The position numbers and the translations under genes were made by a program. From Adineta vaga (lineage: Eukaryota > Animalia > Rotifera), in NCBI GenBank assembly GCA_021613535.1, contig CP075496.1, positions 14,508,001-14,572,000 of the forward strand: DNA of 64,000 nucleotides. Direction: 5' to 3'. This document shows, in pieces, positions 8,710-58,015 of the stretch. Position 1 is the first letter of the stretch. Every line of letters begins with the position of its first letter. A model generated the notes under the pieces. It was not told the DNA's origin and did no database searches. It worked only from the letters and a program-made list of their open reading frames with translations.

Positions 8710-11632
8710 ATGAAAGATTTTTATACAATTAAATTCAAAGTAAATTATTTATTTATTTTTTTATTTATTTTATTTTATTTTATTTTATTAGAATATTCCA
8801 ACAATTATCTATTTTATATATTTCTTTTCAATTAATCATTTTCTTATAAATGCCTTTTCAATTCAAAGTAATTTGCTTTTATTTATTCTTTTTTTTTATT
8901 TTTTATTTTTATTAGGAAATGATTATTTATCTTTCAATGATGATATTGATCATTCACGTTTCCAACGTGATGTTCAACTTCAACAGAACATAGGTAGAGC
9001 TGATGATTTAACTTGTATGTGTCCATGTGCATGTACAACAACGACAACGACCACAACTTGTAAGAATCTTTTTTTCTGTTCTATTATTTATAAGTAGAAT
9101 ATCAAATTAGAATTATATAAAGATAAGAAAAAAAGATTTATAATCATTATTAAATTTAAAAACAATTAAAAATAGTGAAGACAAAAAATATAGGAATAAT
9201 TATGTGACAAAAGACAAACCTGTCGTTTTCTACGAGTATTAGGGAAATTTCAATCGAGAAAGTCAAGATAAATCTAAATAAAAATCAATGATATCTTCTT
9301 ATTCTTACAATCATGTCGAAGATTGATTTATAGGGAAACAATTTTTGTTTAAATTTCAAAACTAAGCTTATTGAACACAAAACAGAGAATATCAAACTTC
9401 ACTACATAATTTTCACAAGAAACATAGAATAATATTTTATTTTATACAATTAATAGCAACTAGTTCAACATCATCCACTTCTACATCATCATCCACCTCA
9501 ACATCAACAACTTCATCAACATCATCTACTTCCACAACATCCACTTCGTCAACATCAGCTACAACATCGACATCATCGACATCCACAACGTCAACCACTT
9601 CGACAACAACAACAACTGGAACAACGTCCACATCCTCAACATCATCGACTTCATCGACATCCACCTCATCGACATCATCGACTTCGTCGACATCATCCAC
9701 CTCAACAACATCTGCAACTTCATCCACTTCTTCAACATCAACTACCTCAACGACATCAACCACTACAACAACTGGAACAACTTCCACCTCTACAACATCA
9801 TCGACTTCAACGACATCAACGACGTCAACGACAACAACTGGTACAACGTCCACTACGTCGACGACATCAACTACCACATCATCAACTTCTTCAACATCAT
9901 CTACCTCATCAACTTCGTCTACCTCATCAACAACATCAACCTCCACAACCTCCACGTCTACAACATCATCCACATCAACAACCACTGTCACAACATCCAC
10001 TACTTCAACATCAACTACCTCATCGACATCATCCACTTCTTCAACATCATCCACATCTTCAACTTCGTCCACATCCTCAACATCATCGACAACATCGACG
10101 ACAACGGAAACGACTGCAACATCTAGCACTACGTCGACAACATCAACTTCCACATCATCCACTTCTTCAACATCATCTACCTCGTCAACTTCATCTACCT
10201 CATCAACATCATCGAGCTCCACAACATCCACGTCTTCAACATCATCCACCTCATTAACCACTGACACAACATCCACTACCTCAACATCCACGTCTTCAAC
10301 ATCAACTACCTCATCAACATCTTCAACGTCATCCACATCTTCAACTTTGTCCACTTCCACAACATCCACAACATCCTCAACATCGACCACCACTACTGAG
10401 ACTACATCATCCACCTCAACTTCGACTACTTCAAGTACATCAACTACAAGTTCGTCAACATCAACTACTACTTCTACATCGACCTCGGCTACTGGAACAA
10501 CAATAACAGAAACATCAACAACGTCAACTACTTCTACTACAAGTACATCGACATCATCAACATCAAGTACTTCCACTACAAGTACATCGACATCATCAAC
10601 ATCAACTAGTACATCATCCTCGTCTACTTCTTCAACTTCAACTACATCCACATCCACTTCAACATCTTCTAGTTCAACTTCATCAACATCAACTTCATCA
10701 ACATCCTCATCATCATCGACAACATCGACAACAAGTACAGGCACCACATCAACTTCCTCCTCAACGTCATCTAGTTCAACTTCGTCTACATCAACGTCAT
10801 CAACATCCACGTCTACCTTTTCAACTTCAACCAGTTCAACTTCAACTTCGTCGACATCCACTTCGACGTCATCTAGTTCAACTTCATCGACGTCCACTTC
10901 TTCAACATCGACTTCAACATCGTCAACATCGACAACTAGTACTGGCACAACATCAACTTCATCCTCAACCTCATCCAGTTCGACTTCATCAACGTCTACC
11001 TCGTCAACGTCGACATCGACTTCGACAACATCGACAACTAGTACGACTACCACATCAACTTCATCCTCAACTTCATCCACTTCAACTTCGTCAACATCCA
11101 CGTCCACTTCTTCAACATCAACATCAACTTCTACTTCAACATCAACTTCGACCTCTACTTCAACATCAACTTCAACTTCTACTTCAACTTCTACTACAAG
11201 TACTAGTACCACGTCCACTTCAACAACCTCTACAACTTCAACTACCACTTCTACTACTACGACAACTTGTTTACCAATATGTTTACAATGGGATTGTTGG
11301 ATCAATGTCACTGCAACAATTCCATATTCTTCGACGGTGAGAGATCCAAATAGTCAAACATCAACAAGTACAACAACAGAATCACAATTGCAACGAGAAC
11401 TAGTAGCATATTCAAGTACTATCAAAGGACTTGAAGATGAAAATTATCGGTTGAAATTAGGATTAGGACTTGGTCTAGGTGTTGGTGTATCAGCAGCAAG
11501 TGCAGCGGCACTTGGTTCTGTTGTTTATTTCAAAAATCGGTAAGAGAATATATAATTTAAGAAATAATTCTATTAACTTGATTTTTTTTCTTCTTTTCTT
11601 TTAGTCTGTCAAGTCTACATAATGCTATTTAA
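8710..11632 (+). CDS. Ser/Thr-rich mucin-like type I membrane protein
   Basis: Phase-compatible exons 8710-8739, 8792-8867, 8916-9059, 9457-11539, 11605-11632. Hydrophobic N-terminus, CMCPCAC motif, ~600 aa S/T tract, CLPICLQWDCW, and a TM segment LGLGLGLGVGVSAASAAALGSVVYF. Confidence 0.8.
9457..11267 (+). repeat. Low-complexity coding repeat (TCN/ACN codons) of the mucin
   Basis: Degenerate Ser/Thr codon repeats with periodic GTT/ETT interruptions. Confidence 0.9.
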
Positions 11633-34631: not shown

Positions 34632-35813
34632 GTTTTAGTTTTGTTTTTATCGTATTTTTCTTAAATTTCGATTTCATCTTTAAATATGTAAAATTAAAAC
34701 AACAGACAGATGTTTTTCTTTTCCACTACCAAAATAAAAAATCTGATACTGAGAAATTTAGATATTTTCTTTTATTTCAAATTAAAAAAAATGAACATTT
34801 TTTCATTTAGGATTCAAATGCTCGAGTAATGAAACTATTAGAAATTTTTCCAGTTGGTGTTAGATTATTAATCTAGATCGGACTGTCAATACTTGTCATA
34901 ATTTGATCAACTTTACGAGAGATGCTTTCTATTGTACATAATCTACCCCAAGTAAATCATGTATTACTTCATCAAGCAAATCAAAAATCTTATGTTCTAA
35001 AGTACAAATTATATTTTCGAATTCAATAACAATGTTTCCTGTTGGTTGGATACTTGCTGGAATCGTTTCTTTGATATTGGAAAAATCCACAGATGTCTTT
35101 CACATATATGTAGCACAATCATTTGGTCGTATGGTATATGATGTGGATTATTATGATATTCTATTTTACTCATCAAAAGATGCTAAACGAATAATGTTTA
35201 CTATCGGTAGTTCATTCTGTATCATAATAACTTTTTCTAATGGTACATTGTCAAAGAAACTTGGTATCTAAAAAGTAACGTTCGTAACTTTCATTTTATA
35301 TTATCAGGTTCATAAATCGATAACGGATGTAATGTTAGATTTATCGATCTAAGTTTATATATTAAACTAAATCTTTTTTTTTCTTGAATATAACCAATAC
35401 TTTCTACCAAACAACTCAGTGTGGGTCCATTTTTTTCTATTGAGGAAACCACCAAACCTCAAGAAAAAAAATAGTAGAAATACCATTTGAACAGAAAGAA
35501 AATTGAATGAATTGTTTTTCTCGATGCAGTTTTGCTTTCGTCCTTGTCGTTCCAGTTAAACAACGAGCATGTTGATTATCACTACCGACAGTCTATTTTT
35601 TTGACCGACTCTTCAACGAAAAAGAAGAAAAAACGTCTAAACAGACAAGTATTGAATAGAACAGACAGACTGTCTAAGAATATATTTAGAATGTATAGAA
35701 TCGTTTCTCTTACAAACAGACACGACTGATCATTAATTAAAAAGAGAATAGAAGGAAGAAAATGTTGAATATTTCATATATAAGTTCAGTTTATTTGAAC
35801 AAAACTTTGATAA

Positions 35814-36485
35814 ATGTTTTCAATGAACGAAGCGGTTGTATCATTAAACAATGGATTATCATCAGTCGACGACAAACAAATATCATGTTATGTTGATATG
35901 AAAATCTGGCTTCACATTTATTTAATGGTTGTAGTATCTATGGAATGTATTATCTCCCTTATCTATCTGACCTTATCGTGTATTTTCTTGTTCTCTTTTT
36001 TCGTTTATCCTCATTGGTATCGTTCAATTGGTTTAATATCTAGATCTCTCTTACTGTTACACGAGGAAGAAGCGGCAGCACAAAACTATGGAATATTTTT
36101 CTTAAGAAATGAAGTAATATTAATATTTATTTATGTATTTTTGGTCTTTATGTATACGTGGCTTGGGTTCCTCAATAACAAATATACTGTTACATATATG
36201 GATTTTTGTCAGTGGTTACTCGAAGCTTCATTTTTTCGAATCGTTTTCTTTGGTATATATTCAACTGGAGACGAATCTTTGATTCGTAATTATATATCAG
36301 GTTATGTTACAGCAATCATGATGCTTTATGCGGAGAGAAATGAAGATTTTTTCATTCATGATATGAAAGCGTTTGTTTTTCGTGTATATTGTTTAAAAAT
36401 GAAATATATAAATAGGATAAAATTATTAAATGAAAGAATTTCTTATCTGAATATTTTTCATATAGTTTGTTCGGAATTTAAATAG
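35814..36485 (+). CDS. Putative multi-pass membrane protein, unrecognised
   Basis: 223-aa ATG ORF with several hydrophobic segments but no recognisable motif. Confidence 0.35.
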   Translation: MFSMNEAVVSLNNGLSSVDDKQISCYVDMKIWLHIYLMVVVSMECIISLIYLTLSCIFLFSFFVYPHWYRSIGLISRSLLLLHEEEAAAQNYGIFFLRNEVILIFIYVFLVFMYTWLGFLNNKYTVTYMDFCQWLLEASFFRIVFFGIYSTGDESLIRNYISGYVTAIMMLYAERNEDFFIHDMKAFVFRVYCLKMKYINRIKLLNERISYLNIFHIVCSEFK

Positions 36486-37263
36486 ATTTAGTAGAAGAAA
36501 TCGTTTCACGGAACAATCGAATGACATGATTCATTTTTGAACATTTTCCGTTAGTTGTTGTAGACAATCCTTTTTCGTACGATAACTTCCTAGTGAACAG
36601 AAATATAAAAATAAGATGATTTCTTATATGTGAATATCTGAAGCAACATCAAAATAAAAATTGAGATATTATGTATAACTTATGTTAAAATTGATAGAGA
36701 GATTGTAAAACAAAAAGTAGCATTGTCTTTCGTAATACATATGTTTACAGTTTTGAAGTATTTTCTATCTTTATTTCTGATATTTTTTCAAGAATATTTC
36801 AAATCATATAAACATTGAAGATTCAACACAACGAATAATTAACAAAAACAGAAATTAATTTTCATGTATTTAATATTGAGAAAGCTAAGTGAAACACCAT
36901 TAGAAAATTATAAAAGAATATCATTATATCTTCGATAATTCACCTGATCAGATTCATCTTCGAACTCGAGTAAATGTGATAATGCTCTATAGAAAATTTC
37001 ATCATAATCGAATTAGTTTTTCAGAAATTATCAAGTAAACGAACGAATGGACGAACATATTCATTGAATCTAGTAGTGTGTACTCACTTTTTGAATAAAC
37101 TAAAAAATCTTCATAAAAATATCGTTGATGTGAAAGAAATACTTTAAAACAAATTTTATCTTGAGAAATAATAACATTTGAAGAAACACAATTATAGATA
37201 TTGATCATTCAATTCAGTCGAGATCTAAGATAATTTTAGTTATATCAAAGTTAATTTATTTGT

Positions 37264-38582
37264 TCATTGTCTATATAAATATTTAATCATTTGTTTAAAA
37301 TCTTCATCAAATGTTGAATTAAATATTGAATTAATTGTTGTAAATGGAAATTTATTTAAATAATCATTGATATTAATTGGAATATAATCATTTTCTTTAA
37401 TATTTAACCATTTTTCCCAACAATAAATTGAAATTAAATCAAAATCTTGATTAAATTTATTAAGAAATAATTTATGACTTTTTTCAATAAAATACAAATC
37501 TTTATAATTGAATTGACAAATTCCTTGAATATAATTTTCTGATTGACAATGTGTAAAAGGTTGTCCTTTCCAATTTTTATAATGAGATAAAAGTTCATAA
37601 TAAGGATAAAATTTTGTTTTTTTTCTTGATTTAAATGAAGATAAATGTTTGAAATGAATTAATGTTGAATAAAAATGTTCATCTGGTATTGATGTTTGAT
37701 TTAAATAAGAAAAGAATTCATTTGATAAATAATCATTATGAATTTCATTTAGAAATTTTCGTGTTAAAATTGTATGAAATTCACCTTTATAAATTGTAAA
37801 ATTCGAATATTTTGTTGATTGTGGAATTGAACTAATATCAACTTGATTTTTATCTTCAATTAATTGAAGAATTTCAACACGATTTCGATTTGTTTGAATA
37901 GGAAGTTCAGTACCAGCAATAGTCATATAATAAAACCATTTTGTTGATTTTTCAATTAAAATTTTTTGACAAATTCTTTCAGCTTGTAAAATTTGAAATG
38001 ATCCCCATGAAATATTAAATCTTTGATTTGATAAATAAATATTTTGAAAACATTTTGATAATTTCAAAGCATATTGATAAATTTGTTCAGATGCTTTAAG
38101 ATCAATATGAATACAATAGAAATTTGTTTGAATATATAATGTTCGAATTAAAATTTGAAATTGATAAAAATTTTTATAAATAAAAATTGTAAATCCCATT
38201 GGATTTTCTTTTTCAATTTTTGTAAAAGATTTTTTAAAAAAGAAATGTTTTTTAATAAATTCTTTACATGAAATATTTTCATTAAAATTTTGCCAAATTT
38301 TTACTTTTTCTTTTAAGAAATTATTTTTTCTTTTTATTTCATTTTCATCGATTGATTTTCCATTGATTAAATTTCCACAAAATGTTTTTTCAAGAAAATC
38401 TTTACGAGAAATTTGTTTCAATTGATTATTTCGATTTGAATAAATAAGAATTAAAAAGAGAATTAAAATTAATAAGAAAATATTCTATTTGAAACAATAA
38501 AAAACCATTTTTTTTTATGAAAAATTTCAAAAGAAAAGTTTTTTACCTTGAATTTCAAAAGAAATTTCTTTTGAAAAAACAT
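37264..38582 (-). CDS. Core-2/I-branching beta-1,6-GlcNAc transferase (GT14), type II membrane, 2 exons
   Basis: Exon 38582-38547, 62-bp intron, exon 38484-37264. Signal anchor followed by YCIHIDLK, SWGSF, ELPIQTN, IPDEHFY, GICQF and LFLNKF. Confidence 0.85.
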
Positions 38583-38720
38583 TTGAAAATATGTACAAAT
38601 AAAAACTTTCTTCTTGCAGCGTTAAATTCTTTTTTCGTTCTTTTCAAATGAATCATTTTCTTTCAAAACAAAAAAGTCTTTCTTTTTACATAAAGATAAC
38701 ATTTCATTAGAAAAAAGAAG

Positions 38721-39878
38721 ATGGTTCGATATCTTACGTTAATAATATTCTTTTTGTGTTTATTCAAATCCAATTCATTAAAAGACTCATCGAAACCACC
38801 AATAATATTTATTCCTGGTTTTCTTTGTAGTTTATTAGAAGTTCGTGTTAATACAACAATTCAAACATTATGTCCAAAATCTCTTGATAATCAATGGATT
38901 CTTCTTTGGTTAAATATTCGTTTTTTTGAACCTGAATATTTATTATGTTTTCATAAGATATTTTCATTAATTTATAATAAAACATCCAATGAATTTGAAA
39001 ATGATTTAGGTGTTGAAACACGTCTTGTAACAAATTCTTCATCAAGTTCATTTTTAAATGGTTTATTATGGGAATATATTGATTTAGATAAATTTCTTTA
39101 TCATTTTCTTTCTAAACATCAATATATTGATGGAATTAATTTATGATTTTCGACATGGAATAAATAAAAGTTTGAATTTATTTTCGAAAAGATTAAAAGA
39201 ATTAATTGAAATAACTTAATAAGTCATAGTTTAGGTGGATCAATGATATTAGATTTTTTAACAAAACAAACACAAATATGGAAAGATCAATATATAAATA
39301 GTTGGATTTCATTAAGTGCAAACATAGCGGGTGGAATTGATAATATTCAAAGTTTAATTCAAGGTTTTGTTTCTCCATTAATTCCACATCAAATTCTTCA
39401 GTCATGGGATTTTTATGCATGGCGTTTACCAAATTCATTTATTTATGGTTCGAAAAGAATTTTAATAAAAAGTCCATCAAAAAATTATACTTCCTATGAT
39501 TTATATTCTTTTTTAAATCAAATAAATGCAAATAATCTTGCTCAAGTTTATCTTAATTCATCATTAATTCTTTCATCACTTCCACCACCAAATGTTAATA
39601 CATTTTATTTTTTTGGTACAAATATTTCAACACCACTTCAATATATTTCTTCAACAGATAGTTTTAGTAAAAAAATTCAAATTCTTTATGGATCAGGTGA
39701 TGGAGAACTTGATGATACAAATCATTTGTCTTCTCATTTATGGAATAAAACAATGAATCCAAAATATAAACTTTTTATTAAATCTTTTCAACATGTTACT
39801 CATGTGGGTTTAATTTCAAATCAAAATCTTCTTCAACAAATTGATCAAATTATTTTCAATTCTTTGAATTTAAAATGA
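38721..39878 (+). pseudogene. LCAT / lysosomal phospholipase A2 (PLA2G15)-like, disrupted at ~39140-39220
   Basis: Signal peptide, PPIIFIPGFLCSLLE, YDFR, ISHSLGG nucleophile elbow, GDG and HVGL. The expected GAP before YDFR and the strand before SHS are missing and the frame is broken. Confidence 0.75.
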
Positions 39879-39916
39879 AAAGAATAAGATTATGTTTTAA
39901 TAACTATCTTGTATAT

Positions 39917-40005
39917 CCGAACTTAGCTCAGTTGGCAGAGCGGTAGGCTGTAATGGACATTTCATAGAAACCTATAGGTCCCCAGTTCAAATCTGGGAGT
40001 TCGGA
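39917..40005 (+). tRNA. tRNA-Tyr(GTA) with 16-nt intron, copy 1
   Basis: CCGAACT/AGTTCGG acceptor stem, D arm GCTC/GAGC, anticodon arm GTAGG-CTGTAA[intron]A-CCTAT, T arm CCCAG-TTCAAAT-CTGGG, oligo-T terminator. Confidence 0.95.
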
Positions 40006-40475
40006 TTTAACCTTTTTTCTTTTTTTTTTCTTTCTTTCCTTCTCTCTCTCTCGAAATATATTTATATGAAATACTATTAGTCTATCTTTTGATTTCTAAT
40101 AAGACAAATTTATAAAATCTTACACGATAGAACATTTTAAAAATCGCTCAATACAATAAATTGATATAAAATAATGGAATCTATCGGATATACTTCATCT
40201 GAACTCACAACGATTTGAATATAATATAAATACTTAGATTTTTATTCAGGATATTCACAAAGAAAAAAAATATCACTTATATCATTTTTAAATCCAAAAT
40301 GAAAGATCAATCGTATTCACGTAAAGATGACCAATTGAACGCTTGAATTCCATAAAATCCTCCTCGATTCAATGGATGTGGGTGTGTGCTCTTTACTTCA
40401 ATCTCACTCATCCCCAGAAAATTATCGTTTCAATGATCTGGTTTTTAAGGTAAATTTCGACACGTACAGATATAT

Positions 40476-40564
40476 CCGAACTTAGCTCAGTTGGCAGAGC
40501 GGTAGGCTGTAATGGAGTATTCATAGAAACCTATAGGTCCCCAGTTCAAATCTGGGAGTTCGGA
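40476..40564 (+). tRNA. tRNA-Tyr(GTA) with 16-nt intron, copy 2
   Basis: Exons identical to copy 1; intron TGGAGTATTCATAGAA. Confidence 0.95.
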
Positions 40565-41488
40565 TTTAACCTTTTTTTTTCTTTTTCTTTCTACTAAAAC
40601 AAATGTTATACAAAGATAGTTATTCTTTATTTATTATTGTAGAATTGTTATCTAAGATTATTAAATTCAATTGAAAAGATTCATCGTATTCGTTTGAATA
40701 TAAAATGTAAAATCGAATGTTTTCTTAGTTCAAATAGAACTAAATCGATTTTTCTATCACCATGAAAATAATCAATATATTAAGAAAAAAATACTAAAAG
40801 GAAAGAAAAGGTTCAAGTTATATTTGTAGTAAAACCATTCTGAAAATCGTTCTGGCAAATTTTTCAATTTCATGAATAAATATTTTGAAATGAATTCTCA
40901 TCATGGTAGAAAGTTCCTTTATCAACAATTGAAAATGATGGTAATGAAATAACAAAAATCTTATACTCGAATATTGACTCTGGAATATCGTTCATATCAT
41001 GAAACTTTGTGTCATATTGTGTATGATTGTTATCAAAATGAATTTTATAAAACTGATGGTATGTTTAATCAGACTGTAATTAAGAACAATGAAGATTCGT
41101 TGTAAGGGCTTTATCTTTTTATTATTGTAAAAAATAAAAATCATATCAAACTCAAGTTTTAAAAGATATGTAGCTGATTTTGAGAAAAAAATCCTCGTGT
41201 AAATTCTACACAATACGTTAATTAAAAGAAGCTCATATGAAAAGATTTTCTTTTTCCTACAATTAATTTCGAGTATTTTCTCAAAGACTTCGAAAAGATG
41301 AATTCTTAGAAAAAACCTATTCGAAAATAAATATTAAGATTTTCTTTTATTAATACGTAACAACATTTCATATCGAATGTTTTTCTCGAAAAAAATCAAT
41401 AGAAATTTCATTTTGTTTTCTATCAATTGAAAATCATCGTTTTGAATGATCTGGTTTTTAAGGTAAACTTCGACGCGTACAAACATAT

Positions 41489-41577
41489 CCGAACTTAGCT
41501 CAGTTGGCAGAGCGGTAGGCTGTAATGGACTATTCATAGAAACCTATAGGTCCCCAGTTCAAATCTGGGAGTTCGGA
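41489..41577 (+). tRNA. tRNA-Tyr(GTA) with 16-nt intron, copy 3
   Basis: Exons identical; intron TGGACTATTCATAGAA. Confidence 0.95.
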
Positions 41578-42221
41578 TTTAACCTTTTTCTTTTCTTTTT
41601 CTTTTTTTAAGAAAAAGGTATTCATTAGATATCTTTATAGAATCGAGAAGAAATTATTTTTATGTTTGTACTTTAAACAGAAAAGTTCCGAATATATGAA
41701 ATGGTACGTAAAATCGGTGTGAAGCTAGCACCACGAAAGCTTGCACGAAAAACAAAGATTTATATGAATATCTTTCTTTGTATTTTCTTAATGATTGATT
41801 TATTTGCTAAATATATGATATGAACGATTATTTTGAATAATGTCGAGTTTGTAAATGATTCATCTAGATGAATAACTTTATGTATAGGCAATTAAAGAAT
41901 ATTTGTTCAGACAGCTCCGATGAATCAACTCTTATAGTGCAAATTCAAAGTACAGAATAAGATTTCTTACTCATTCAGATGATTAATCATGAATTTGTTT
42001 TTCTAGAATCTATCAAATAATCGTTATATCAAAAAAAATGTGCGTATTTTTTCATCCATTTTGTTCTTTCTTAGCAATATATTATGAAATTGGTCTAAAT
42101 AATACATGATGTCATACTTTGATCGAATGAATAATAGAAAAATCGGAATTTTTCTTCTTTCTATAAGAGAAAATAGTCATTTCCTTATATTTGAAGATAC
42201 AGATATTGATCAAAATATATT

Positions 42222-43802
42222 ATGTTTGTAAAAATATTTATTTTCTCGTTAATAATTTATTATGGTGTCACTAGTTTTCAAGCAAAAGATTTCTATGTCA
42301 AAGACTTACCTCTTTTACCAAAATCTGAATCTTCTATTCAAATGCATGCAGGACATTTACCAGGTTAATTCAAAGATGATGGTTCTCTATTTTTTTGGCA
42401 TTTTGCGAAGAAATTCTCAAGTGATAAATCAAGAACAGTCATTTGGTTAAACGGAGGTCCTGGTCAAAGTAGTCTCATGGGAGCTTGGACAGAAATTGGT
42501 CCTTTTCGCTTTCTCAATAAAGATACAATAGTGACAAATAATGAATCATGGCATCTCTATGTGAATCTTTTATTCATTGATCAACCAATTGGCACTGGTT
42601 TTTCTTATGTTAATCGAGGTGAATTGATAAAAGAACTCGATACAATGACAGAACATTTTGTTGGTTTTCTTGATCGATATGTTGAAATTTTTCCTGAATT
42701 ACTTGAACAAGATCTTTATTTAGCTGGTGAATCATTTGCTGGTCAATATATTCCTTATATTGCACAAGCAATTCTTAAAAAACGATCCTTATTCAAATTA
42801 CGTGGACTTCTAATTGGAAGTGGATGGATTGATCCTGTTTCTCTTTATAATTCATATGTACCATATGCAATTTTAAACGATTTAGTACAAAACGATTCAG
42901 TACTGCATAGAAATATTACTCGACTAGTTACTATATGTCAAGATATATTGTCGAAACAAGTACATATTTTTGTTGATTTATGTTTAGCTCTTCTTTATGA
43001 GATAATAAATAATGGTACAAGACGTGGAAATAATGAAGAAGATTCATGTACCAATGTTTATGATATACGATTAAATGCGAAAAAACCTCTATGTGGAATG
43101 AATGGACCACCTGAACTTGAATATGTTTCTGCTTATTTAAATCGACGTGATGTTATGTCGAGTATTCATTTAAATGAAAAGAAATCTCAATGGAAAGATT
43201 TTACAGAATCAGTTTATAATGCATTGGAAGCAATAGATTCTAAACCATCGATTGATTTCTTGCCTGCATTACTTCAACAAATTCCAATCTTATTCTTTAA
43301 TGGTGAATATGATTTCATTTGTAATCATATTGCAACAGAAAATATGTTGAATAAAATGATATGGAACGGTGAAATTGGATTCAATTTAGGAAATGGAAAA
43401 GTGGCTCCAATCTATGAATGGATCGTAGATGATATATCTGCAGGTTACATACGATATGCACGTAATTTAACGTATATTCTTTTTTATAATGCTGGTCATA
43501 TGGTACCTTATGATCAGGCACATCGCTCGCGTATTATGTTACATCAATTTATACAATTAACTTTAAATTATTCTAACAATCAAACAAAAGATAATAATCA
43601 TACAAGAATTTATTATTCAATACCAATTATATTCACAGTGATCTTTAGTATAATTCTGCTTAGTATCATTCGATATTTTGTTCTCAAACAACAAAAATGT
43701 GTGAGAATCGCTTCTGTTCATCATTCTTATATATTTCAATCAGGACAACAATTAGAAACATATTCAGCTTTGAAGAATATCAAAGATGATGATTTCGTAT
43801 GA
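42222..43802 (+). CDS. Serine carboxypeptidase S10, Kex1-like with C-terminal TM, intronless; in-frame TAA at 42366-42368
   Basis: Signal peptide from ATG 42222, then DFYVKDLP, MHAGHL, WLNGGPG, DQPIGTGFS, GESFAG, GEYDFIC, AGHMVP and a TM segment near the C-terminus. Confidence 0.85.
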
Positions 43803-43883
43803 CACACATTGAATCTAACCAGAATATATTTATTTTCTTCTTTTATTTTTCTTTAGTCACGATAAATTTAGTAAAATAAGGAT

Positions 43884-43931
43884 ATCTTGAGGGTGTGAGG
43901 TGTAGGTGTTTTTTCAATTTAACCCACACCC
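43884..43931. repeat. Short repeat with telomere-like arms
   Basis: atcttgagggtgtgaggtgtaggtg...aacccacaccc. Confidence 0.6.
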
Positions 43932-44147
43932 ATTTTCTTATACTATCCAATCGTACATGATTTCTTATCTTTACTTTTGTACAAGATTGACTAGTCAATT
44001 CTATCGTATTCGTCTTTTATTTTCTAAATAAAACAAGTCAGTATATGTATATATCCATTGTATTGATCGATATTTTATTTCGACGACAACATTTTCATTA
44101 GTTCTGATCGATTAAATAACGTAAAATAATAGAATTCTATTCTTAGA

Positions 44148-44771
44148 ATGAATTTTTATATTAGTATTTTCATCATTACTATTATTGTCATCGTAAATTC
44201 ATCAAAATTAGAAGTTTCATTATCAAGAATTGAACATGATTCTCATGAAATAACAAAATTAATCCAAAAATCTTATACTCAAATCATGTCTTCAAATTAT
44301 CAAGACTTTCGAGATCTTCTTTGTCGTGCTGTTAATGATTGTTGTCTGCGCGAAGATGATAAACATCGTGCTATGTATAATGATGTGAATTTATTCAGAA
44401 GTTGTTCACCAAAAGAAATCAACATGAGAAATTTATTTGATCGATCAAAATGTGAATTATCATTTAATCGATATTCGACAGCTAAAGCTGTAGTACAAAA
44501 TGAACCAATATATTTTCTTTCTGAAACTGTTCGTAAAGATTCACATCGTCAAAAACGATTGCTCGAATGGTTTACAATAATGAGTGTATCTTGTATTGAT
44601 AATGAATATTATGTCTATTATTGTCAAAGAGATAATTATGAACAATTAAGATTATGTCAAATGGAAGTTTTAAAACAAGCAGCTGATTTAGGAAGTTATC
44701 CTAGAATAAATTATACACAATATCTCAATCAACTCAAAGAAGATCATACAAAAGGATTTTCCATTTATTAA
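44148..44771 (+). CDS. Secreted cysteine-containing helical protein of unknown function, intronless
   Basis: Signal-peptide-like N-terminus, 8 Cys including CC, 207-aa ORF. Confidence 0.7.
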   Translation: MNFYISIFIITIIVIVNSSKLEVSLSRIEHDSHEITKLIQKSYTQIMSSNYQDFRDLLCRAVNDCCLREDDKHRAMYNDVNLFRSCSPKEINMRNLFDRSKCELSFNRYSTAKAVVQNEPIYFLSETVRKDSHRQKRLLEWFTIMSVSCIDNEYYVYYCQRDNYEQLRLCQMEVLKQAADLGSYPRINYTQYLNQLKEDHTKGFSIY

Positions 44772-44993
44772 AATTTAATCAAATCTTCTTTTTTCTTCTC
44801 TAAAAAATTCATGTTTCACTTCTTTAATCATTCAAATATTAATAAAGACCAATATTCTCTTAAAGATCTTCGCTGTAGATTAATCAATAATTCGATTTAT
44901 TTAAAGAAAATATCACTTTTTAAATATAAATTCGAATAAAAATAGATTTTCTTTTATTTTCATGCAATTACCCAAGCAGACAAAGGTTTAGAA

Positions 44994-45263
44994 AAACGCA
45001 CAATCGGGAACCGCGATTGTAAGCCATTCACGCTGATTAATAAAACGTCGAAAACGCCGTTTTTTACGTTAAATTATCTCTTTTAGAGCGTTAAAACGTG
45101 CTATTGTTCTAGAATTTTAAAAACATGGGTTTAGACGCTAAAAATGGGAGTTTTTCATCGTTTTAACGCTCTAAAAGAGATAATTTAACGTAAAAAACGG
45201 CGTTTCCGACGTTTTATTAATCAGCGTGAATGGCCCACAATCGCGGTTCCCGATTGTGCGTTT
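44994..45263. mobile_element. Foldback element with ~110 bp near-perfect inverted arms
   Basis: aaacgcacaatcgggaaccgcgattgt...gagcgttaaaacg is mirrored at 45159-45263. Confidence 0.85.
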
Positions 45264-45389
45264 AAACGCGGCAATTATAGTTGACACAGAATTTTCTTTT
45301 TTCGTAGTATCTCAATTGGTTATGATCGATTCAAAATCATATTTGAATTGCCTAGTTTTTGAGGGAACTTTTCATACGAATAGATATAT

Positions 45390-45478
45390 CCGAACTTAGC
45401 TCAGTTGGCAGAGCGGTAGGCTGTAATGGATTATTCATAGAAACCTATAGGTCCCCAGTTCAAATCTGGGAGTTCGGA
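45390..45478 (+). tRNA. tRNA-Tyr(GTA) with 16-nt intron, copy 4
   Basis: Exons identical; intron TGGATTATTCATAGAA. Confidence 0.95.
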
Positions 45479-45868
45479 TTTAACCTTTTTTCTTTTTTTC
45501 CTACGTAAAACAATGTTGTCGAGAGAAATAGAAAAAAAGGTTTTTATCTTATTTTTCAAATATAACACGTGGAAATATGTTGGAAAATATCAAGTTAATT
45601 TTCTTAGGTTTTAAATATTGAATAGAAATTTCATTGTTTAGTTTCAAATTGATTTCTTTATCGGATAAAAATAAAATTTTTGCAAAAATAATCTATTCAA
45701 AAAATCTGTTGAAATTCAAATTGGAATAAAAATGAGTCATCAATGACGAATATTGTGTAAGATTTGTTGAATAAAAGGAGAATTTTTTCTTATTTTCAAC
45801 GAAGTCTTTTTTATGTCAATGTGAATCAACGTTTCTTTTCTTCTTTATTTAGATTTTTTGTGATAAAA

Positions 45869-46656
45869 ATGCATTCTGATTTAACAACTGATTTATCATT
45901 AATTCGTTCAAATTTATCGAAAAGAAAATTAGATCAAGAAAATGTTGTTTTATTATCAACAGGTTCATTAAATCCTGTTCATCGTTCACATCTTTCGAAT
46001 TTAATACGAACAAAAGAATATCTTGAAAAGAATTGTCATTTTAATGTTCTTGGAGGATTTCTTTCTCCATCACATAATGAATATGTTCGAAGTAAATTAA
46101 AAAATCAATTTCTCGATGGAAAATTACGAATTGAATTATGTCAAAATGCTATTGAAGAAGAAAATCAACAAGATTGGTTATCAGTTGATAAAGCTGAGTG
46201 TATGGGTAATAAATTTCAATGTTTTCTTTTCCTTTTTCAAAAGATTTCTTTTATTTTATTTTAGCATCTCGTTTTATTAGTTTAGATGGAGTTACATTAA
46301 GTTTAAAAATGTATTTAAATGAAAATATTCCATTAGAAAAATCGATTCGTGTTATTTATGTTGCTGGTTTAGATTTATTTAATCGTTGTCATGGAATGAA
46401 TCGTTTAAGAAAAAAACCATTAGATGGTCTTGCTGTTGTTTATCGACATGGAGAAGATCAATCATTCATTCAATCATTTCTTAATAAAACTGATCAAAAT
46501 ATAATATTTATTCCATTTGATGAAAAAGATTCCAAACAATTAATGAATATAAGTTCAACATTAATACGAGAAAAACTTCAATTAAATCAAGATTGTTCTC
46601 ATTTAACTTATCATTCTGTATTGAAATATTTTCAATATAAAACAATGGATGAATAA
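45869..46656 (+). CDS. NMNAT-like nucleotidyltransferase (cytidylyltransferase superfamily), 2 exons
   Basis: TGSLNPVHRSH (HxGH-like), GGFLSPSHNEYV, YVAGLDL and ISSTLIR; intron 46206-46264. Confidence 0.82.
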
Positions 46657-46685
46657 AATCTTATTTCAATAACTATCTTGTATAT

Positions 46686-46774
46686 CCGAACTTAGCTCAG
46701 TTGGCAGAGCGGTAGGCTGTAATGGATTATTCATAGAAACCTATAGGTCCCCAGTTCAAATCTGGGAGTTCGGA
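46686..46774 (+). tRNA. tRNA-Tyr(GTA) with 16-nt intron, copy 5
   Basis: Exons identical; intron identical to copy 4. Confidence 0.95.
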
Positions 46775-46928
46775 TTTAACCTTTTTTTTTCTTTTTCTTG
46801 TTATATTTTTTTATTTAAAAGATTAAAAAAAGAAGAACGAAAACTACAGATGAAAATAAAAAGACTTTTGTGAATTTTAGTTTTTTTTCAAAAAAAAAGA
46901 AAGTTAAATTGTAAAATGAATATTGTAT

Positions 46929-48020
46929 TTAAAGTAAAGCTTTACACTCTGTACTTTCTCTTTCATCACAAAGTGCAGCTGCATCTTTATCTTCATTATT
47001 TCGAATTGTTTTATCCGCATTAGCAGCAACTAATGATTTAACAATACTTGGTTTATTAAAGAAACAAGCAACCATTAATGGAGTATTTCCTCGTTGATCT
47101 TTAGCATTTACATCTAAACCAGCTTTAATTAAAATATCCACACAATTTGGACTATCGACCATTCCTAAATAAATTGAAATATATTTCAAAATATTGTTTC
47201 TTTCAAAGAAAACAAACCAGCAGCAGCAAAATGTAAAACAGTTCCACCAGTTTCATTTTTAACATCAAGTTGTGTTGTTTTATAATTAACTAATTTCTGT
47301 AAAATTTGATCACGATTTTGTCTTGCAGCAATACTAATTGCTCTTTCACCTAAGAAAACAGCATTAGGATCAACTTTTGCTTCAATCAATGCATCTAAAC
47401 ATTCTGGACGATCATTAATTGCAGCTCTAAATAAGAAATATTTAAATAAATAAAATAAAAATCAATTTAATTGAATTACTTATGAACTGGTGTTAATTGA
47501 TGTTTATCAGGATGATTAACATTAGCACCTTTAGCAATCATTTGTCTAATAAGATCTGCTCTTTGTGTTTCAGTTAATGTTTGTCCTTTATATGGTCCAT
47601 CAACAAGAATATGAATAGCTGTTAAATCATGTTCAGTTTCAGTTTGATCTGGTTTTGCACCATTCTTTTTTTTAAAATCAAAATTTTACTTCTTTAAATC
47701 ATTATTTCAATAAAACTTACATCAAGTAAAAATTTGATTGTATCATAATCTCCTTCAAAACAAGCGATGATTAGTGGTGGAACTTTCGCACGAGATTCTC
47801 CTGTTTTATCATCGTAAATATCAACTAAATCTGATGCCGAATGCTCTCCAAGTGCTGCTTTTAATTTAGATAATTTTGCATCGGCAGCTGCTGATCGATC
47901 AATACTCCAGATTTCTTGTAAAATTGCACTATGTTTATTATAAAATGGATGATCTTTACGACTTAAAAAGAAAAAGAAAAAGATATGAAGAAAATTGTTT
48001 TTCTTTGTTTTTTACCTCAT
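46929..48020 (-). CDS. Ankyrin-repeat protein, multi-exon
   Basis: PPLIIAC, GANVNHPDKHQLTPVH, GGTVLHFAA and GNTPLMVAC across short exons. Confidence 0.85.
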
Positions 48021-50533: not shown

Positions 50534-52999
50534 TCTAAATTTTATATTTAGATTTTCGTTTTTTCATTGGAAGTTTTTGAAATTTATTTTTTAAAAATAA
50601 ATTTTCATTTTCTCTTTTGTTTTTCTTTTTTCTAATTAAGTTCTTTTTTTTGTTTTAATGAAATAAATAAATAAATGAAACAAAAACGAAAAAGCGAAAT
50701 AACTGAAGAGAAAATGATGAATTTGTGCTCTACTGGTCATGCGAATCGAAGAAGATCGCCCACGGCTCAACGTGTAGAAGAATCGATTTCTTACCTATCG
50801 TCCCTTTATAGCTTCCTTTCCTCGTCGTCGTTGTTCGTTTTTCGTCCTCGTCGTTATTCTTCGTCACAGATCAATGCTTTTACTTTTTCATCAATATTCA
50901 AACGTATCTTTTTTCTCTCTATCAAAACATTTTCTACCAATGAAATCATTTCGTTTCTTTTTTTCTTTTCTCTCGAATGTTCTTTTATATTTATCATTCA
51001 TTTAAATTTTATTGGTAGATTCATTTCTCCGTCTTCGTCTTCTATCTATATGGACTTTTTTTTTGTTCTATATTCATCAGATAAAATATCTTTTCTTTAT
51101 TATTATATAACATTCTTATACAATACAATAATTCAATCTTGATCTTATTTAAGATAATCGATTATCTTTTAAGATGATATTAACACTTTTCAATATCTTC
51201 TTTTTAGTTTTATTTTCATAATTGATGATTTTTATCATTGAAGAAGATATTTTATCCTTTTTAAATATCTTTTATATCCATGGGCAAATATCTTTTCTCT
51301 TAAATTATCGTTGATTTACAAGAAATAACGAAAAATTCATTCTCATTTAATATCTTACTTAGATAAACAGAAGAAAAAATATTGAACATTTGGTAAATAA
51401 AAACAATCATAATGAGAATATAATAACATCATTTTCATTTAATCGTATTATTCGAGGAGACAAAAAGTTTGAAAAAAAAACACATTTTCACACACGATAC
51501 GATCAGAAATTATGATTATGACCTATATTCACGCTCAACAAACGGATGTCGTTTTTTTTAAAAGATAATTTCTAATCTTAGTGCGTGAAAATGTTAGTTT
51601 ATAATGTTCCTCTATTTTTGTGCATTTTTTTCCGATTGATAATGAAAAAGAAAAATTATATTTTATGTTTTATTTAGTAATAATTAATTCTACAAATGAG
51701 ATGATCTACTCTACGAATTTGCAAATCGACAATGAAGGTCTTAACTCTTCAGTTTTAGAAAATATTCATGATGAATTATTTATCCACGTAAGGATGTTGA
51801 ACAAGAATGAGGATATTAACTGGATACGAGTTTAACATACAACATTTCAAATGCTAAAATACGTAGCATGAAGATCTGTCAAGTAATCATCAAATCATAA
51901 GCCAACATGGCACTCTGTACATTGATAACGTGAAGGCATCTTTTCTTTTCGAACGTTTCATATAATATGCATTCGAGAACTACGCAAGAGTCAACTGTGT
52001 GAACGCATCATTACATGATTATCATGGTATTAAACCAGATACAGTATGACAATAATAACAGAGAAAATTTGACGACGATAGACTTGCTGATTTCTTACAT
52101 AAATGTTGGTATTATAATCAAGTATGATATGTAATACTCCTTTAACCACTCGATTGAATATTCAGTATTTGAATCTACAAATGTTAATGATTATCGAAAA
52201 ACTGATTTATCAACATTCTGTTATTTTATTTTAACAATGATGTGGAAGATCATCTATTTATTTTTTGGATAAATTTTGTATTCCAAATGGAAAACATCAG
52301 CAATGAAAAAAATTTCAATTGATCAGTATTCTGCGATCAATTATATGGTCGAATGTAAAAGAAATGGAATTTAAAAAAAAACAGTTTTGAAGTGATTTTA
52401 ATTGAAGATGAAATAAATATAATTGATAAGTTGATTTATGTCCCAATTGTTTGTAAAAAAACACGATTTATAGAATTTTCTAATTTTCGGTTAAATTTAT
52501 ATTTTTTCTTCTATAATAAAAGCTTAATAATTTGAAAACATTTTCCTAAAATCTGTTCCTACAAGACAAATAAAGGAGATTTCTTTTTCATATGGAATTG
52601 TTGATTTAATTGAAGGGGTAAAACTTGCCGCCATAATTCATCATCGTTTTCTTCACTATTTCTAATAATTATTTAACATTTTTCGAAATCAAAAAATAAA
52701 TCTTAGCATCGTGCAAATGTATCATTAGTTAAAATATACCCAAGAAATTCTTTCATATATCTATATATTACTAGATAAATTAAAAAAAACAAATAAATAA
52801 TAAGACAATTTGAACTTTTATCATATGAAAATTTCTATTGTACTAATCACATTTGATGAGATTGATTATTCTTGCTTTGAATTAGATAGAACAGATGTGT
52901 ACATTTTTTTCAGATCATTCTTTGTTCATAGATGAGCTTAACATCGTCATTGATACAGTCTATCGATTTCAATAAATCAAGGCTTATTTCACCTTATTA

Positions 53000-53235
53000 A
53001 ATCATAGACGAAAGAAAGATCGAGATCATAAGTGACTTGTGTCTATACTTGTTTGAATGTATGTAATGGATAGTGATACATCTAGATAGAAAATAGATAG
53101 ATTTTGCAGCACGAAAATAAAGTAGTCGTTTCTATGATTGCTCAATCGTTCTCTCATATTCTTTTCAGAAAGTCAATTGTAGTTGAGTAATGTGTCTCTT
53201 CCATTGTCATAACAAAAGTGGAGGAAAATATTGTT
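53000..53235 (+). repeat. Diverged dispersed repeat, copy A (internally deleted)
   Basis: Aligns to 58428-58595 and 58727-58797 but lacks ~130 bp present in copy B. Confidence 0.7.
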
Positions 53236-53964
53236 TAATCTTCAATTATTATATCAGTTCGTTCAAGTAAAGTGGTCGACAAAATATAGAGAAATGGCCA
53301 CACCGCGCAGACAAGAGTTGCCAAAGACGCATGAAAACACTACAACAATTCGGGAGATTTTTCGATGTCGATTGCAGTCCTCGACCGGCAACCAAGAACG
53401 TCTTAAATAGATATTCATAAAAACGTAAAAATTTTCTCAACATCCAGGATATTGGCATGATTTTATGAAGGTTTTAGGTGAATCATAGCGTTAACTCACA
53501 GAGAAACCTTCATGAGGCTTGGAAACTCCTAATAATGAGAAATTTCTACTTAAATTACGCAAATTAGGAAGAATCTGTGTTTACACGGTAATAAAATGAG
53601 TATTCTTTGCGTGTATGCAGTAGAAATATGTTGTAGACTAAGATTTTTCAGGTTGGCTTGCGAAAAAGTTTAAATTGTTGGTGTTTACACGACCATTTAT
53701 TTTTACACGCATGTGAACACCCATCAACAGGTCTTTTAAAAGAGAAGGGATCTTGTATGAACAGTTCCTCAGCTGGAATATCACCCAGTACATCAGCGTG
53801 TCTATCACTCGGGAGACAGTCTCTTTTGTGATATGTTTTTAACTGATTCATAATAATCTCACTGTAAACATATTGCACAAATGACAGAAATGTATAAATA
53901 TGTCTGGCAATTCGTTCCATATAATCTTTTTTATTTAAACGTTAGTCTAGCCAACAAAATATAG

Positions 53965-55525
<1,561 letters not shown>

Positions 55526-55659
55526 AATAAATATTTTATTCCAATACTATTTCTCTTATTATTCTCGATCAATTTCAACGAAAAATTATAGTTTTAATAA
55601 TACTCTCTTGTTTCAGATACGATATACATATTACGATCGGTTTATTTATTGATTTATTT

Positions 55660-56354
55660 ATGGGTAACGGCCCATCAAAAATAAGAATAGGGGTGAAGAT
55701 CAAATGTTATGTACACTTCATATCGAAGATCCAATGAAAGCCGGTTCTATATATCTTGTGATTCATGAACCGACAATTCAAACATGCGAAGATGATGTCG
55801 AGAAGAAAGACGTTATGCAAGTTGAGAAAACGTCGCACTTCGGTATCGCTGTTGACATAACTGGTAGATTTGAATTATTTTGTTTACTTTTCGTTGATTT
55901 CGTTTTCTGTAAAGGATCGTCCACTGCTGAAGAATTGATTGCAACACATTATGATCTGTATGTCAAAGGCGCAACAGATTTTACTACGTACATTGAAGCA
56001 AAACTGAAACGACGTCCTTGGGATTATTATCATTCAGTACGAAAAATCGGCCAATTTCCTTTGGGAGAAATTACAAGCTTTGTTATACCACATTCATTTG
56101 CACGCAATCTTGAAAATCGTTTATTACAATTCGTTTATTCTTCATTGTATCTACAAAATAATGGTGTTCGTTGGTCTTCAATATTGAATTGTCAAACTAT
56201 GACACGATCTGCCATTGAATACTTGGGTTATACATTTCCAGATGATATTCAATTGATTACTGACATTGTTCCCACCATGTTCGATCTTTATGTAAACGTT
56301 GATTTGGCGACTACACAGACATATAAAAAGTCGAAAGAGAAATTACCTCATTAA
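55660..56354 (+). CDS. Permuted papain-like (PPPDE/LRAT-type) peptidase-like protein; probable frameshift near the 5' end
   Basis: HFGIAV precedes NCQ (His-before-Cys order), with a 51-bp in-frame intron at 55864-55914. The upstream MGNGPSK start at 55660 is one base out of frame at an A-run. Confidence 0.55.
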
Positions 56355-57512
56355 GAGACAAATTTTTATTTGATTTATCTTGCTATTCAAAGCACACAAA
56401 GAAATTTGAATTTTTACTTTAAAAATATTTTCTGGGAATCATCAAAATAAATGGACCGACTGAGCTTTTAAAACTGATTCAGAATATAATGTTGTTTTTC
56501 AACTAAATCTTAAATTTCTAAGTAAAAGCGTTCTAAAAAGGTCTTGAGTATACGAAAACCATGTTCTAACACCAATGCAGCCAGATATCTCACAGATGAA
56601 AAAAAGGCTTTAAGATTTCCTATATGTTTAATTTTGTAGCTAGTAAAAAAATACTATCAGATAGTAAAAATCTGATTTGCATAGCTTTTGTTCTGAATGA
56701 GTTATTATCAGCTTGTAAATATTTGCGTCGGCGAGATGAACGATCAGTGTTTTAAGAGTCAAACCTATATTAAAATTAAAACGAATATATTGAATTATGT
56801 TTTTTAATTGCACTAAAAAGATATTTAGCTAAATCAAAATGAAAGGCTTTTCAGGTCATCTGAGTAGATTTATGTTAACGAAAATTAAATAAAAGACAAA
56901 CAACGCAAGTATCATTAAATAGAACTGATTATGTAAAGTATTATGAATATTTTAATCATTCCAAAATAACGTTTTTTTCATTTATTAACATTTATCGTAA
57001 TAAAGAAAATAGTATCTATTTCTGAAAAAAGATGAACAATCAACTAGAACAAGAAGAAAACAGCAAACATTATCTTCACTCAATTATTTATGTCATATTC
57101 ATATGGACAGTGTTTAACTATTTCTTCGACAAAGTCATCTTCCTTCTACAATTGAACTTGTCATTGACAAAGAGGTTTTACTCACAAGAATCGATTAAAA
57201 TCAACAACAGGCAATAAACAATTATTCTGGAATAGAAACAACAATAATAACAAAATCATCTGATGAATGTGTAGATATTATTCGAATATTTTTTTCCACA
57301 AACTGTCTCTATTGAATATAGAAGAGATTAATAAAATAAAACAATCAATTTTAATTAAAATTTCGTTTTTCGAATTTGTTCATCTGATTAAAAAGTGTTC
57401 ATGACTATTCTATTGCATAATTTACAAAAAAAAGGTAATCCCTTATCATTTAAATCAAAGCCAATTGTTTCTCAAAAGTTCTTTGAAATTTAATTAAATG
57501 TATTTATGAGAA

Positions 57513-58015
57513 AAAGGATGAATTTATTCAATTAATTAATCAATAACGATGAGAATTAAAATGAGACAGAAAAACACAATAAAGATGAGATGATGAATAT
57601 TCATTGAAATAAAAAAAACATGTTTGACACAAGGAAGATAATTAATTACCATGAACTCATTTTATTCAATGCCATAAAATAAATCTGACATGATGATCCA
57701 TTTCGAATTGATGAAAAAAAAACTTTTTCATTCTTTTCGCACAAATATCTTTAAGAAAAAATAAATTATATTTATTGAAAATATAAAAATAAAAATAACT
57801 TTAATTTTTGAGCTCTTTTATGCATAAAAACTCTATCCAATGTTGCTGAATCAACATTACGAATTTCAATTGCTTTATTTCCCCATCCCATAACTTTTCC
57901 ATTACTTATATATGCTAAACAAAAGATATTGAAAAAAGAAAACGAAGGTAAATAATAAAATAAACAAACCAACTGATGTTGATAATTCACCCCATTGTAA
58001 TAAAATATCTTTGGT
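57513..58015 (-). pseudogene. Partial duplicate of the MAP4K4 3' end (last CNH exons + 3'UTR)
   Basis: Matches 59616-60125, breaks off mid-exon at ~58015, and carries P>S and G>R changes. Confidence 0.88.

Follow-up and report, generated by a model that had tools for sequence, protein, structure and literature searches.

A tRNA-Tyr gene array in Adineta vaga that probably grew by local duplication, with its tRNA units as passive recombination repeats

Bdelloid rotifers are the textbook example of an anciently asexual group, with extreme repair of DNA breaks and with genes acquired on a massive scale. What, in the genome of such an animal, brings five genes for the same tRNA together, with protein genes lying between them? 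This question is raised by a tRNA-Tyr(GTA) array on chromosome 4 of Adineta vaga, which we analyzed within a stretch of 64,000 nucleotides (nt) (G000:C4:14508001-14572000; hereafter the window, with positions counted from its first letter). The window lies ~650 kb from the chromosome end, in a genome of six contigs and 100.8 Mb in which C4 has 15,224,634 bases. Before and among the tRNA genes stand an LCAT-like, a Kex1-like, a secreted-protein and an NMNAT-like gene, and the initial annotation of the window had proposed that the tRNAs act as anchors that capture, shuffle or delete such accessory genes, in the manner of a genomic island. Our analysis suggests a plainer history: the array was probably produced by ordinary local duplications, with the tRNA units serving as passive recombination repeats and with later decay and patching. 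The five tRNA genes, named Y1 to Y5 in order, are as follows.

39917..40005, + strand: tRNA-Tyr(GTA) Y1; ancestral-type 5' flank; 38 nt past the LCAT stop codon
40476..40564, + strand: tRNA-Tyr(GTA) Y2; class-b 5' flank
41489..41577, + strand: tRNA-Tyr(GTA) Y3; class-b 5' flank, 88% identical to the Y2 flank over 60 nt
45390..45478, + strand: tRNA-Tyr(GTA) Y4; diverged class-b 5' flank
46686..46774, + strand: tRNA-Tyr(GTA) Y5; ancestral copy; 29 nt past the NMNAT stop and ~155 nt from the 3' end of an ankyrin-repeat gene (Ank)

All five copies scored 58.2 bits against the Rfam tRNA model (cut-off 29). Direct reading of the anticodon loop gave CT-GTA-A followed by a 16-nt intron, with A-CCTAT pairing with GTAGG, so that the intron sits one base 3' of the anticodon GTA. 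ARAGORN called the same five genes with a wrong anticodon, because the intron was not modeled. The exons are identical in 5/5 copies, variation being confined to three adjacent intron positions, and the 89-nt units are spaced 559, 1013, 3901 and 1296 nt from start to start, all within 6.9 kb. This agrees with the initial annotation, which had reported five co-oriented copies with identical exons and irregular spacing. Each copy is a whole tRNA gene with its own 5' flank and predicted promoter and terminator, and runs of 5-9 T begin 7 nt 3' of every copy. Five co-oriented copies with the same anticodon thus stand within kilobases of one another, with homologous flanks or spacers, as in same-type tandem tRNA arrays.

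A whole-genome DNA search returned seven tRNA-Tyr copies: the five described here, one at C4:14492810-14492898 on the other strand, and one on C5 (93% identical). Five of the seven detected copies are therefore at this locus, which is the main tRNA-Tyr(GUA) array of A. vaga. The C5 locus was considered as a relative of the window and set aside, the common sequence being the tRNA alone. The flanks divide the copies further. Y1, Y5 and the upstream C4 copy have in common a 38-nt 5' flank with AATAAA inside it and TTGTATAT at its end, and Y1 and Y5 additionally share ~25 nt of 3' flank. A different 5' flank (class b) is common to Y2 and Y3 and, more weakly, to Y4. The grouping of the first copy with the fifth and of the second with the third, as previously annotated, is thereby upheld, with Y4 joining the latter pair less closely.

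Further evidence on the array comes from the sister species A. ricciae. Its locus is collinear with that of A. vaga (HutD, U-box, Branch(-), LCAT(+), tRNA-Tyr, Ank(-) and a large kinase/CNH gene(-)) and has a single tRNA-Tyr, 63 nt past the LCAT stop and ~110 nt from the Ank 3' end; two independent assemblies concur. Between the same outer genes, A. vaga has Y1, 6.77 kb and Y5. The 5' flank of the A. ricciae tRNA aligns to Y5 (z score 5.8) and Y1 (z 3.4), not to Y2-Y4, and its 3' flank aligns to Y5 only (z 3.6). The interval absent from A. ricciae is therefore bounded on both sides by tRNA units, which is the kind of presence/absence difference with breakpoints at the tRNAs that the initial annotation had anticipated. 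Direct repeats flank the variable segment and one repeat stands at the orthologous site, as in repeat-mediated deletion or duplication. One intact tRNA with matching outer flanks is also the expected product of homologous recombination between direct tRNA units. The outer genes that anchor this comparison are the following.

37264..38421, - strand: Core-2/I-branching glycosyltransferase (Branch; Pfam PF02485, E 2e-20); left syntenic anchor
46929..47990, - strand: ankyrin-repeat gene (Ank; Pfam Ank); right syntenic anchor

Branch is collinear with positions 8443-9860 of the A. ricciae contig L026 and is the neighbor of LCAT there too. Ank adjoins tRNA-Tyr in A. vaga, in A. ricciae and in three or four metagenomic bdelloid lineages. 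Among these is contig L018, which carries NMNAT, an amino-acid permease gene, tRNA-Tyr and Ank. A scan of metagenome contigs for exact matches to the 5' exon returned six contigs, of which L034, L035 and L036 show tRNA-Tyr beside Ank. Since the tRNA-Tyr-Ank adjacency recurs in several lineages, the pair is an old one, with Y5 as the ancestral copy. Between tRNA and Ank lie ~110 nt to ~1.9 kb, depending on the lineage. In A. steineri, NMNAT adjoins the same Ank and kinase genes across a 100-bp spacer with no tRNA, and genes for a GH43 protein and a 329-aa (amino-acid) protein lie leftward; this species seems to have lost just the tRNA. Two A. steineri LCAT loci (L028, L038) were considered as orthologous and rejected, being paralogous contexts without a tRNA, and the metagenomic NMNAT contigs L016, L017 and L022-L025 likewise show other contexts and no tRNA.

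These comparisons also bear on the direction of the insertion/deletion (indel). The NMNAT-Ank adjacency is common to three lineages, and the LCAT adjacency to A. vaga and A. ricciae. A. vaga, A. ricciae and A. steineri are about equally distant from one another (75-79% amino-acid identity in these genes), and the composite order of A. vaga (LCAT-tRNA ... NMNAT-tRNA-Ank) is therefore the most parsimonious ancestor under either tree. NMNAT orthologs of A. vaga and A. steineri were present among the search matches and none of A. ricciae was, in searches that did not cover the whole A. ricciae genome. Likeliest, from this gene order, is that A. ricciae lost the interior, NMNAT included, by recombination between tRNA units; both the direction (deletion in A. 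ricciae) and homologous recombination as the mechanism are what we infer from the compared sequences.

The ancestral-type flank has a further peculiarity. At window positions 39879-39916 and 46657-46685, and at 11183-11245 of L026, it begins at or just past the stop codon of a co-oriented upstream gene, and the distance from stop to tRNA at such flanks is 29-63 nt. At Y5, NMNAT takes its final codons and its stop from the flank. The tRNA-Tyr unit may thus double as a 3'-end signal for any gene that lies upstream. Shared coding DNA was considered as the source of a 108-nt similarity between the LCAT and NMNAT 3' ends and was rejected, each 3' end being conserved with its own ortholog; the common part is the last ~38 nt, a tRNA 5' flank that is also found in A. 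ricciae.

The inner part of the array was built by duplication, and two features are needed to follow it.

40868..41264, + strand: secreted-protein pseudogene (from DNA collinearity and tblastn)
44994..45263, no strand: foldback element, resembling a miniature inverted-repeat transposable element; two 105-nt arms, 97% complementary, with a 60-nt loop

Between Y2 and Y3, the spacer is a degraded version, still collinear, of the one between Y3 and Y4 (DNA matches with E 1e-16 to 1e-18). The parts in common are ~150 nt after the tRNA, the secreted-protein gene and ~85 nt before the next tRNA. In the Y2-Y3 copy, the pseudogene has kept aa 18-78 and 185-205 and lost the middle, with one stop and one frameshift; its local DNA score was 56, versus 15.8 +/- 2.1 for shuffled sequences. 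Given this collinearity, Y2-Y3-Y4 are tandem units of a tRNA plus a secreted-protein gene. The extra length of the Y3-Y4 spacer comes from 2.45 kb that include the Kex1-like copy; the foldback explains the remainder. The foldback, which has other copies on C3 and C2, was inserted later than the duplication of the two spacers. The grouping of the flanks, which had been taken as beyond the reach of simple duplication, is thus accounted for: the ancestral flank persists at the outer copies, and the inner ones form tandem units.

A second duplication extends beyond the array. A 5.6-kb segment (window 34787-40421), comprising Branch, LCAT, Y1 and 416 nt beyond it, has an inverted duplicate at C4:14489843-14496894, with 97-98% identity and with two parts in permuted order (L009 1843-3015 and 4392-8894). 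Ends of duplicated segments, of this one and of that with the Kex1-like copy, are found 416 nt and ~640 nt off the tRNAs, at telomere-repeat scars. The duplicate carries Branch, an intact LCAT-like gene and the sixth tRNA-Tyr, and it is the LCAT copy in the syntenic position, in the window, that is decayed. Its two parts are separated by 1.4 kb of DNA richer in guanine plus cytosine (GC) with a small foldback, and at both outer junctions ATCCCCC stands beside a CCGGTCT(C/G)TGA-like sequence. Long terminal inverted repeats were looked for around this duplicate and none was found.

Two junctions in the array carry telomere-type repeats.

40375..40417, no strand: scar T1; G-strand telomere repeat, 16-nt spacer and decayed C-strand repeat, head to head
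43888..43934, no strand: scar T2; head-to-head telomere-repeat pair with a 12-nt spacer

T1 is also present in the upstream C4 duplicate, and the homology of the two copies stops right after it, at 40421. T2 starts where the homology of the Kex1 3' flank to a chromosome-3 paralog ends (CTT(G)AGGG, ~105 nt past the stop codon). That telomere-like repeats and a foldback lie inside the array had been noted in the initial annotation and is correct at these positions. Repeats of the TGTGGG type number five in the window, versus 0.28 expected by chance. Across the genome, the head-to-head pattern (GGGTGTG, 8-45 nt, CCCACACCCA) gave 771+691 matches, whereas the opposite order gave 5+9 and a reversed control 8+8; the sites on C1 cluster toward its distal parts. 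Deletion breakpoints in A. vaga with telomeric repeats and Athena fragments have been read as neotelomeres (PMC13564844), and short telomeric stretches are found among subtelomeric genes and transposons (PMC2861651, PMC7943196, PMC8494291). Because the repeats mark the ends of homology, and in view of those neotelomere breakpoints, T1 and T2 can be read as joins of capped broken ends, for which healing by neotelomere formation is the origin that the sequence context would suggest.

Further head-to-head pairs were seen at window 4032-4069, in L029 (3730-3764 and 8375-8430) and in L041 (3230-3280), and A. steineri has them too (L015 3434-3520 and 19091-19133). Many have palindromic outer ends (CTTGAGGG ... 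CCCTCAAG), spacers are 12-35 nt long, and spacer motifs such as TAAGAGTATAGCCTGAC recur. The pairs as a class may be break-repair scars or a tiny mobile element. A possible third scar in the array at 41716-41740 (GGTGTG ... CACCAC) was too degenerate to count. An enrichment of scars in the array was also considered; the rough count of 2 in 8 kb against ~4 in the 64-kb window was not significant.

The protein genes between and before the tRNAs are these.

38721..39878, + strand: LCAT-like pseudogene of the PLA2G15/lysophospholipase-3 family (Pfam PF02450; comparison with an intact copy)
42222..43802, + strand: Kex1-like serine carboxypeptidase (S10), broken (Pfam PF00450, E 3e-75)
44148..44771, + strand: secreted-protein open reading frame (ORF), intact; 207 aa, Cys-rich, hydrophobic N-terminus; orphan family
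45869..46656, + strand: NMNAT-like cytidylyltransferase, intact; two exons (intron ~46216-46275); NCBI I4U23_021776, Adineta vaga

All four are on the + strand, as previously described; of the accompanying picture of genes with no intron or one, the secreted-protein ORF and NMNAT proved intact, but the LCAT-like gene is a pseudogene and the Kex1-like gene is broken. The LCAT-like pseudogene has lost 14 nt (at ~39140) and 31 nt (at ~39215), leaving ~75 nt between them out of frame and with stops. Its intact copy 55 kb upstream (L009:4940-6139(-)) is 97% identical, intronless and 400 aa long, and identity to the A. ricciae ortholog is 72%. Every bdelloid searched has LCAT-like proteins of this type, whose nearest Atlas clusters belong to ordinary eukaryotic LCAT/PLA2G15 families. 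The Kex1-like gene has an in-frame TAA at 42366-42368 that results from the gain of one base and the loss of another ten bases away. These +1/-1 indels were revealed by two intact paralogs on chromosome 3, of which the array gene is a dispersed copy; its nearest Atlas clusters are rotifer and arthropod S10 proteins. Both broken genes were searched in separate pieces. Frame-restoring indel pairs were seen in both (window 39140-39215 and 42364-42376), with long intact frames on each side. This coincidence has a chance probability of roughly one in nine, so it may be meaningless; otherwise it may point to very recent decay.

For the 207-aa secreted protein, Pfam gave no match and a word search matched only the protein itself. 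Three weak relatives were found among 1.84 billion representatives, and a 22%-identical paralog lies at C4:14319458. The NMNAT-like protein is related to eukaryotic NMNATs, and its gene shares a conserved syntenic block with Ank and the kinase gene. The NMNAT model exons were searched separately rather than joined, and for full-length comparisons the database proteins P0002 and P0012 were taken. GC content is 0.22-0.30 all along the window and 0.27-0.29 in the array, like its surroundings, with no compositional island at the array. Judged from nearest relatives and GC content, the evidence suggests that none of the four array genes is foreign. A Pfam scan of nine ORFs or exon pieces at 35814-46653, covering the array and its left neighbors, found only Branch, LCAT and Peptidase_S10 domains and no integrase or recombinase domain.

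Taken together, these data are consistent with an array that built up around an old tRNA-Tyr gene, itself located immediately upstream of the conserved pair of ankyrin and kinase genes. Copies would have arisen by local segmental duplication of the tRNA with neighboring DNA. Y1 and Y5 would have retained the ancestral outer flank, and the inner copies would be a later tandem family, Y2-Y3-Y4 forming units that each took along a copy of the orphan secreted-protein gene. Y1 with Branch and LCAT would have been copied again, in inverted orientation, 55 kb away. Decay and patching would have followed, in which two genes were broken, the foldback was inserted and the Kex1-like copy from chromosome 3 was joined in, and the two junctions with head-to-head telomere repeats would be what neotelomere-capped breaks leave behind. 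The tRNA units would act throughout as passive direct repeats, between which unequal exchange or single-strand annealing adds or removes DNA. Several points weigh against this history. For the direction of the indel, the argument is one of parsimony across four lineages, unrooted and with less than the whole A. ricciae genome searched; the exchange could have taken place anywhere inside the shared unit; and the proposed history does not account for the class-b 5' flank of Y2-Y4. The evidence for change of the array is comparative. Finally, all four lineages have a different left neighbor of the ancestral tRNA, more turnover than passive homology alone predicts.

That last point is also one of those that could be cited for tRNAs as dedicated anchors capturing, shuffling and deleting accessory and often foreign genes, perhaps through circles of a tRNA plus a gene, as in an island or integron. 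The cross-species indel with tRNA units at both ends, the Kex1-like copy from another chromosome between two tRNA copies, and the permuted order of the two parts in the upstream duplicate, which a circular intermediate could produce, fit this idea as well. It is nevertheless very unlikely. No recombinase was found in the scanned pieces; the tRNAs are full genes rather than partial 3' ends resembling attachment (att) sites; LCAT and S10 appear to be metazoan or rotifer and NMNAT eukaryotic, the fourth gene being an orphan; NMNAT is old syntenic content; and telomere scars, 416 to ~640 nt away from the tRNAs, mark where the Kex1 segment and the 5.6-kb duplicate stop. Dense tRNA arrays without cargo are, moreover, common in the genome. 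In the features that define such a capture system, the locus therefore fails those tested, and most segment ends lie off the tRNAs. What survives of the anchor proposal is that segments were gained or lost at the tRNAs; the capture of accessory or foreign genes does not.

Reversing the direction of the indel would make LCAT-tRNA-Ank ancestral, with the tRNA unit doubled in A. vaga and 6.8 kb inserted, comprising tRNA units, Kex1, the secreted-protein gene and NMNAT. The 38-nt ancestral 5' flank common to Y1 and Y5 would then resemble a long target-site duplication, and an inner part made of joined fragments with telomere scars would not be surprising. This order of events is rather improbable: NMNAT lies beside Ank in A. 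steineri and by tRNA-Tyr-Ank in L018, so the same adjacency would have been needed two or three times, and the A. ricciae ortholog of NMNAT is absent among the matches (short of a whole-genome search). Mis-assembly of repeats, giving five copies in A. vaga or one in A. ricciae, is hardly conceivable. Repeats of 90-180 nt can collapse in short-read assemblies such as those of A. ricciae, but the A. vaga copies each differ in intron variant and have unique flanks, the single-copy structure recurs in two separate assemblies of A. ricciae, and a collapse should have left NMNAT on another contig, where none was seen among the matches.

A different emphasis would be placed by fragility of the site itself, if transcription by RNA polymerase III (Pol III) stalls replication forks and breaks near tRNAs are capped by telomerase and rejoined, so that indels and scars build up faster than in other subtelomeric DNA. 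In yeast, tRNA genes act as barriers to replication forks and as hot spots of rearrangement, which counts in favor of this model. So do the two head-to-head scars in the 8-kb array, the tRNA-to-Ank distance of ~110 nt to ~1.9 kb, the 5' neighbor that varies by lineage, the loss of the tRNA alone in A. steineri and the neotelomere scars at A. vaga breakpoints (PMC13564844). We still consider it unlikely, as 2 scars in 8 kb is not clearly above ~4 in 64 kb on scar-dense distal arms, and two other large indels in the same 30 kb lie away from tRNAs. A wider version is doubtful: a cycle of break, telomere capping and fusion would shuffle gene-sized segments of bdelloid subtelomeres and leave hundreds of head-to-head scars. 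The tRNA arrays would be preferred sites, since Pol III genes break often and identical copies recombine, and the Tyr array would exemplify a general route by which new, possibly foreign, gene copies are stitched in. We continue to favor local duplication with passive recombination between tRNA units.

The two other indels separate A. vaga from both A. ricciae and A. steineri. At window 50844-57618, ~6.8 kb breaks the collinearity of the large kinase/CNH gene with both species and holds + strand protein-kinase ORFs (53965-54790). Between U-box and Branch lies a 3.4-kb stretch that A. ricciae does not have; within it, at 36901-37117, is a dispersed repeat of ~200 nt with at least 35 copies, at 70-80% identity and mostly near chromosome ends, which is probably a small transposon fragment. 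In A. ricciae, a 229-aa gene and the U-box gene are duplicated on either side of HutD (L026 374-2193 and 5883-7704), an arrangement not found in the A. vaga window. Chromosome 4 is homeologous to chromosome 1 (PMC8494291). In the genome, no second copy of the kinase gene was found, the secreted-protein gene and NMNAT have only distant paralogs, and the whole-genome DNA search placed no tRNA-Tyr on chromosome 1. The homeologous locus is therefore gone.

The locus offers a clean, dated example of how genes move, are copied and are lost in bdelloid subtelomeres. It indicates that tRNA copies serve as recombination substrates in bdelloids and that a special capture system is unneeded here. The five copies, distinguishable by their introns, would also be an easy marker locus for unequal recombination after desiccation or irradiation.

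Other same-type arrays exist in the A. vaga genome: eight tRNA-Lys(TTT) genes in 2.8 kb (C2:3791720-3794558), four tRNA-Arg(TCG) genes in 2.6 kb as two divergent pairs (C4:877307-879953), four identically scoring tRNA copies in 0.9 kb (C5:10769192-10770101), and five tRNA-Phe(GAA) genes across 20 kb, interspersed with ORFs and one telomere scar (C2:15669529-15689931). Same-type arrays being common, the Tyr array is one of a class and no unique device. The tRNA-Tyr/tRNA-Ser repeat on Arabidopsis chromosome 1 is likewise a same-type tandem tRNA array. Tandem tRNA duplication in plants is treated in one report (PMC12652284), and another traces tRNA gene turnover in Drosophila by flanks (PMC2997554). 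The A. vaga array resembles eukaryotic tandem tRNA arrays in its identical, co-oriented, same-anticodon genes within kilobases, in local duplication that includes the flanks and in a copy number that varies between species. It differs in its irregular spacing, in the genes, pseudogenes, transposon and telomere scars between copies, and in holding most genomic copies of its tRNA.

Repeat-mediated deletion and duplication between dispersed tRNA genes occur at rearrangement breakpoints in yeast. As in non-allelic homologous recombination or single-strand annealing between yeast tRNAs, the A. vaga locus has direct repeats of ~150 nt with identical cores, and a related species keeps one repeat and no segment; unlike them, it is known from comparison alone. 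With bacterial tRNA-anchored islands and integrons it shares a gene-sized variable segment by a tRNA and presence/absence bounded by tRNA sequence. Unlike those islands, it has no integrase in the scanned pieces and no partial att repeats, its cargo does not look foreign and its tRNAs are whole and functional-looking. Its scars resemble the neotelomere scars of A. vaga in that TGTGGG repeats stand exactly at the ends of homology, in a distal, repeat-rich region. They differ from the published scars in their regular head-to-head form, and the strong orientation bias found here across the genome is not described in those papers. The Tyr array is thus a further case of the known same-type tRNA arrays, whose copies recombine with each other.

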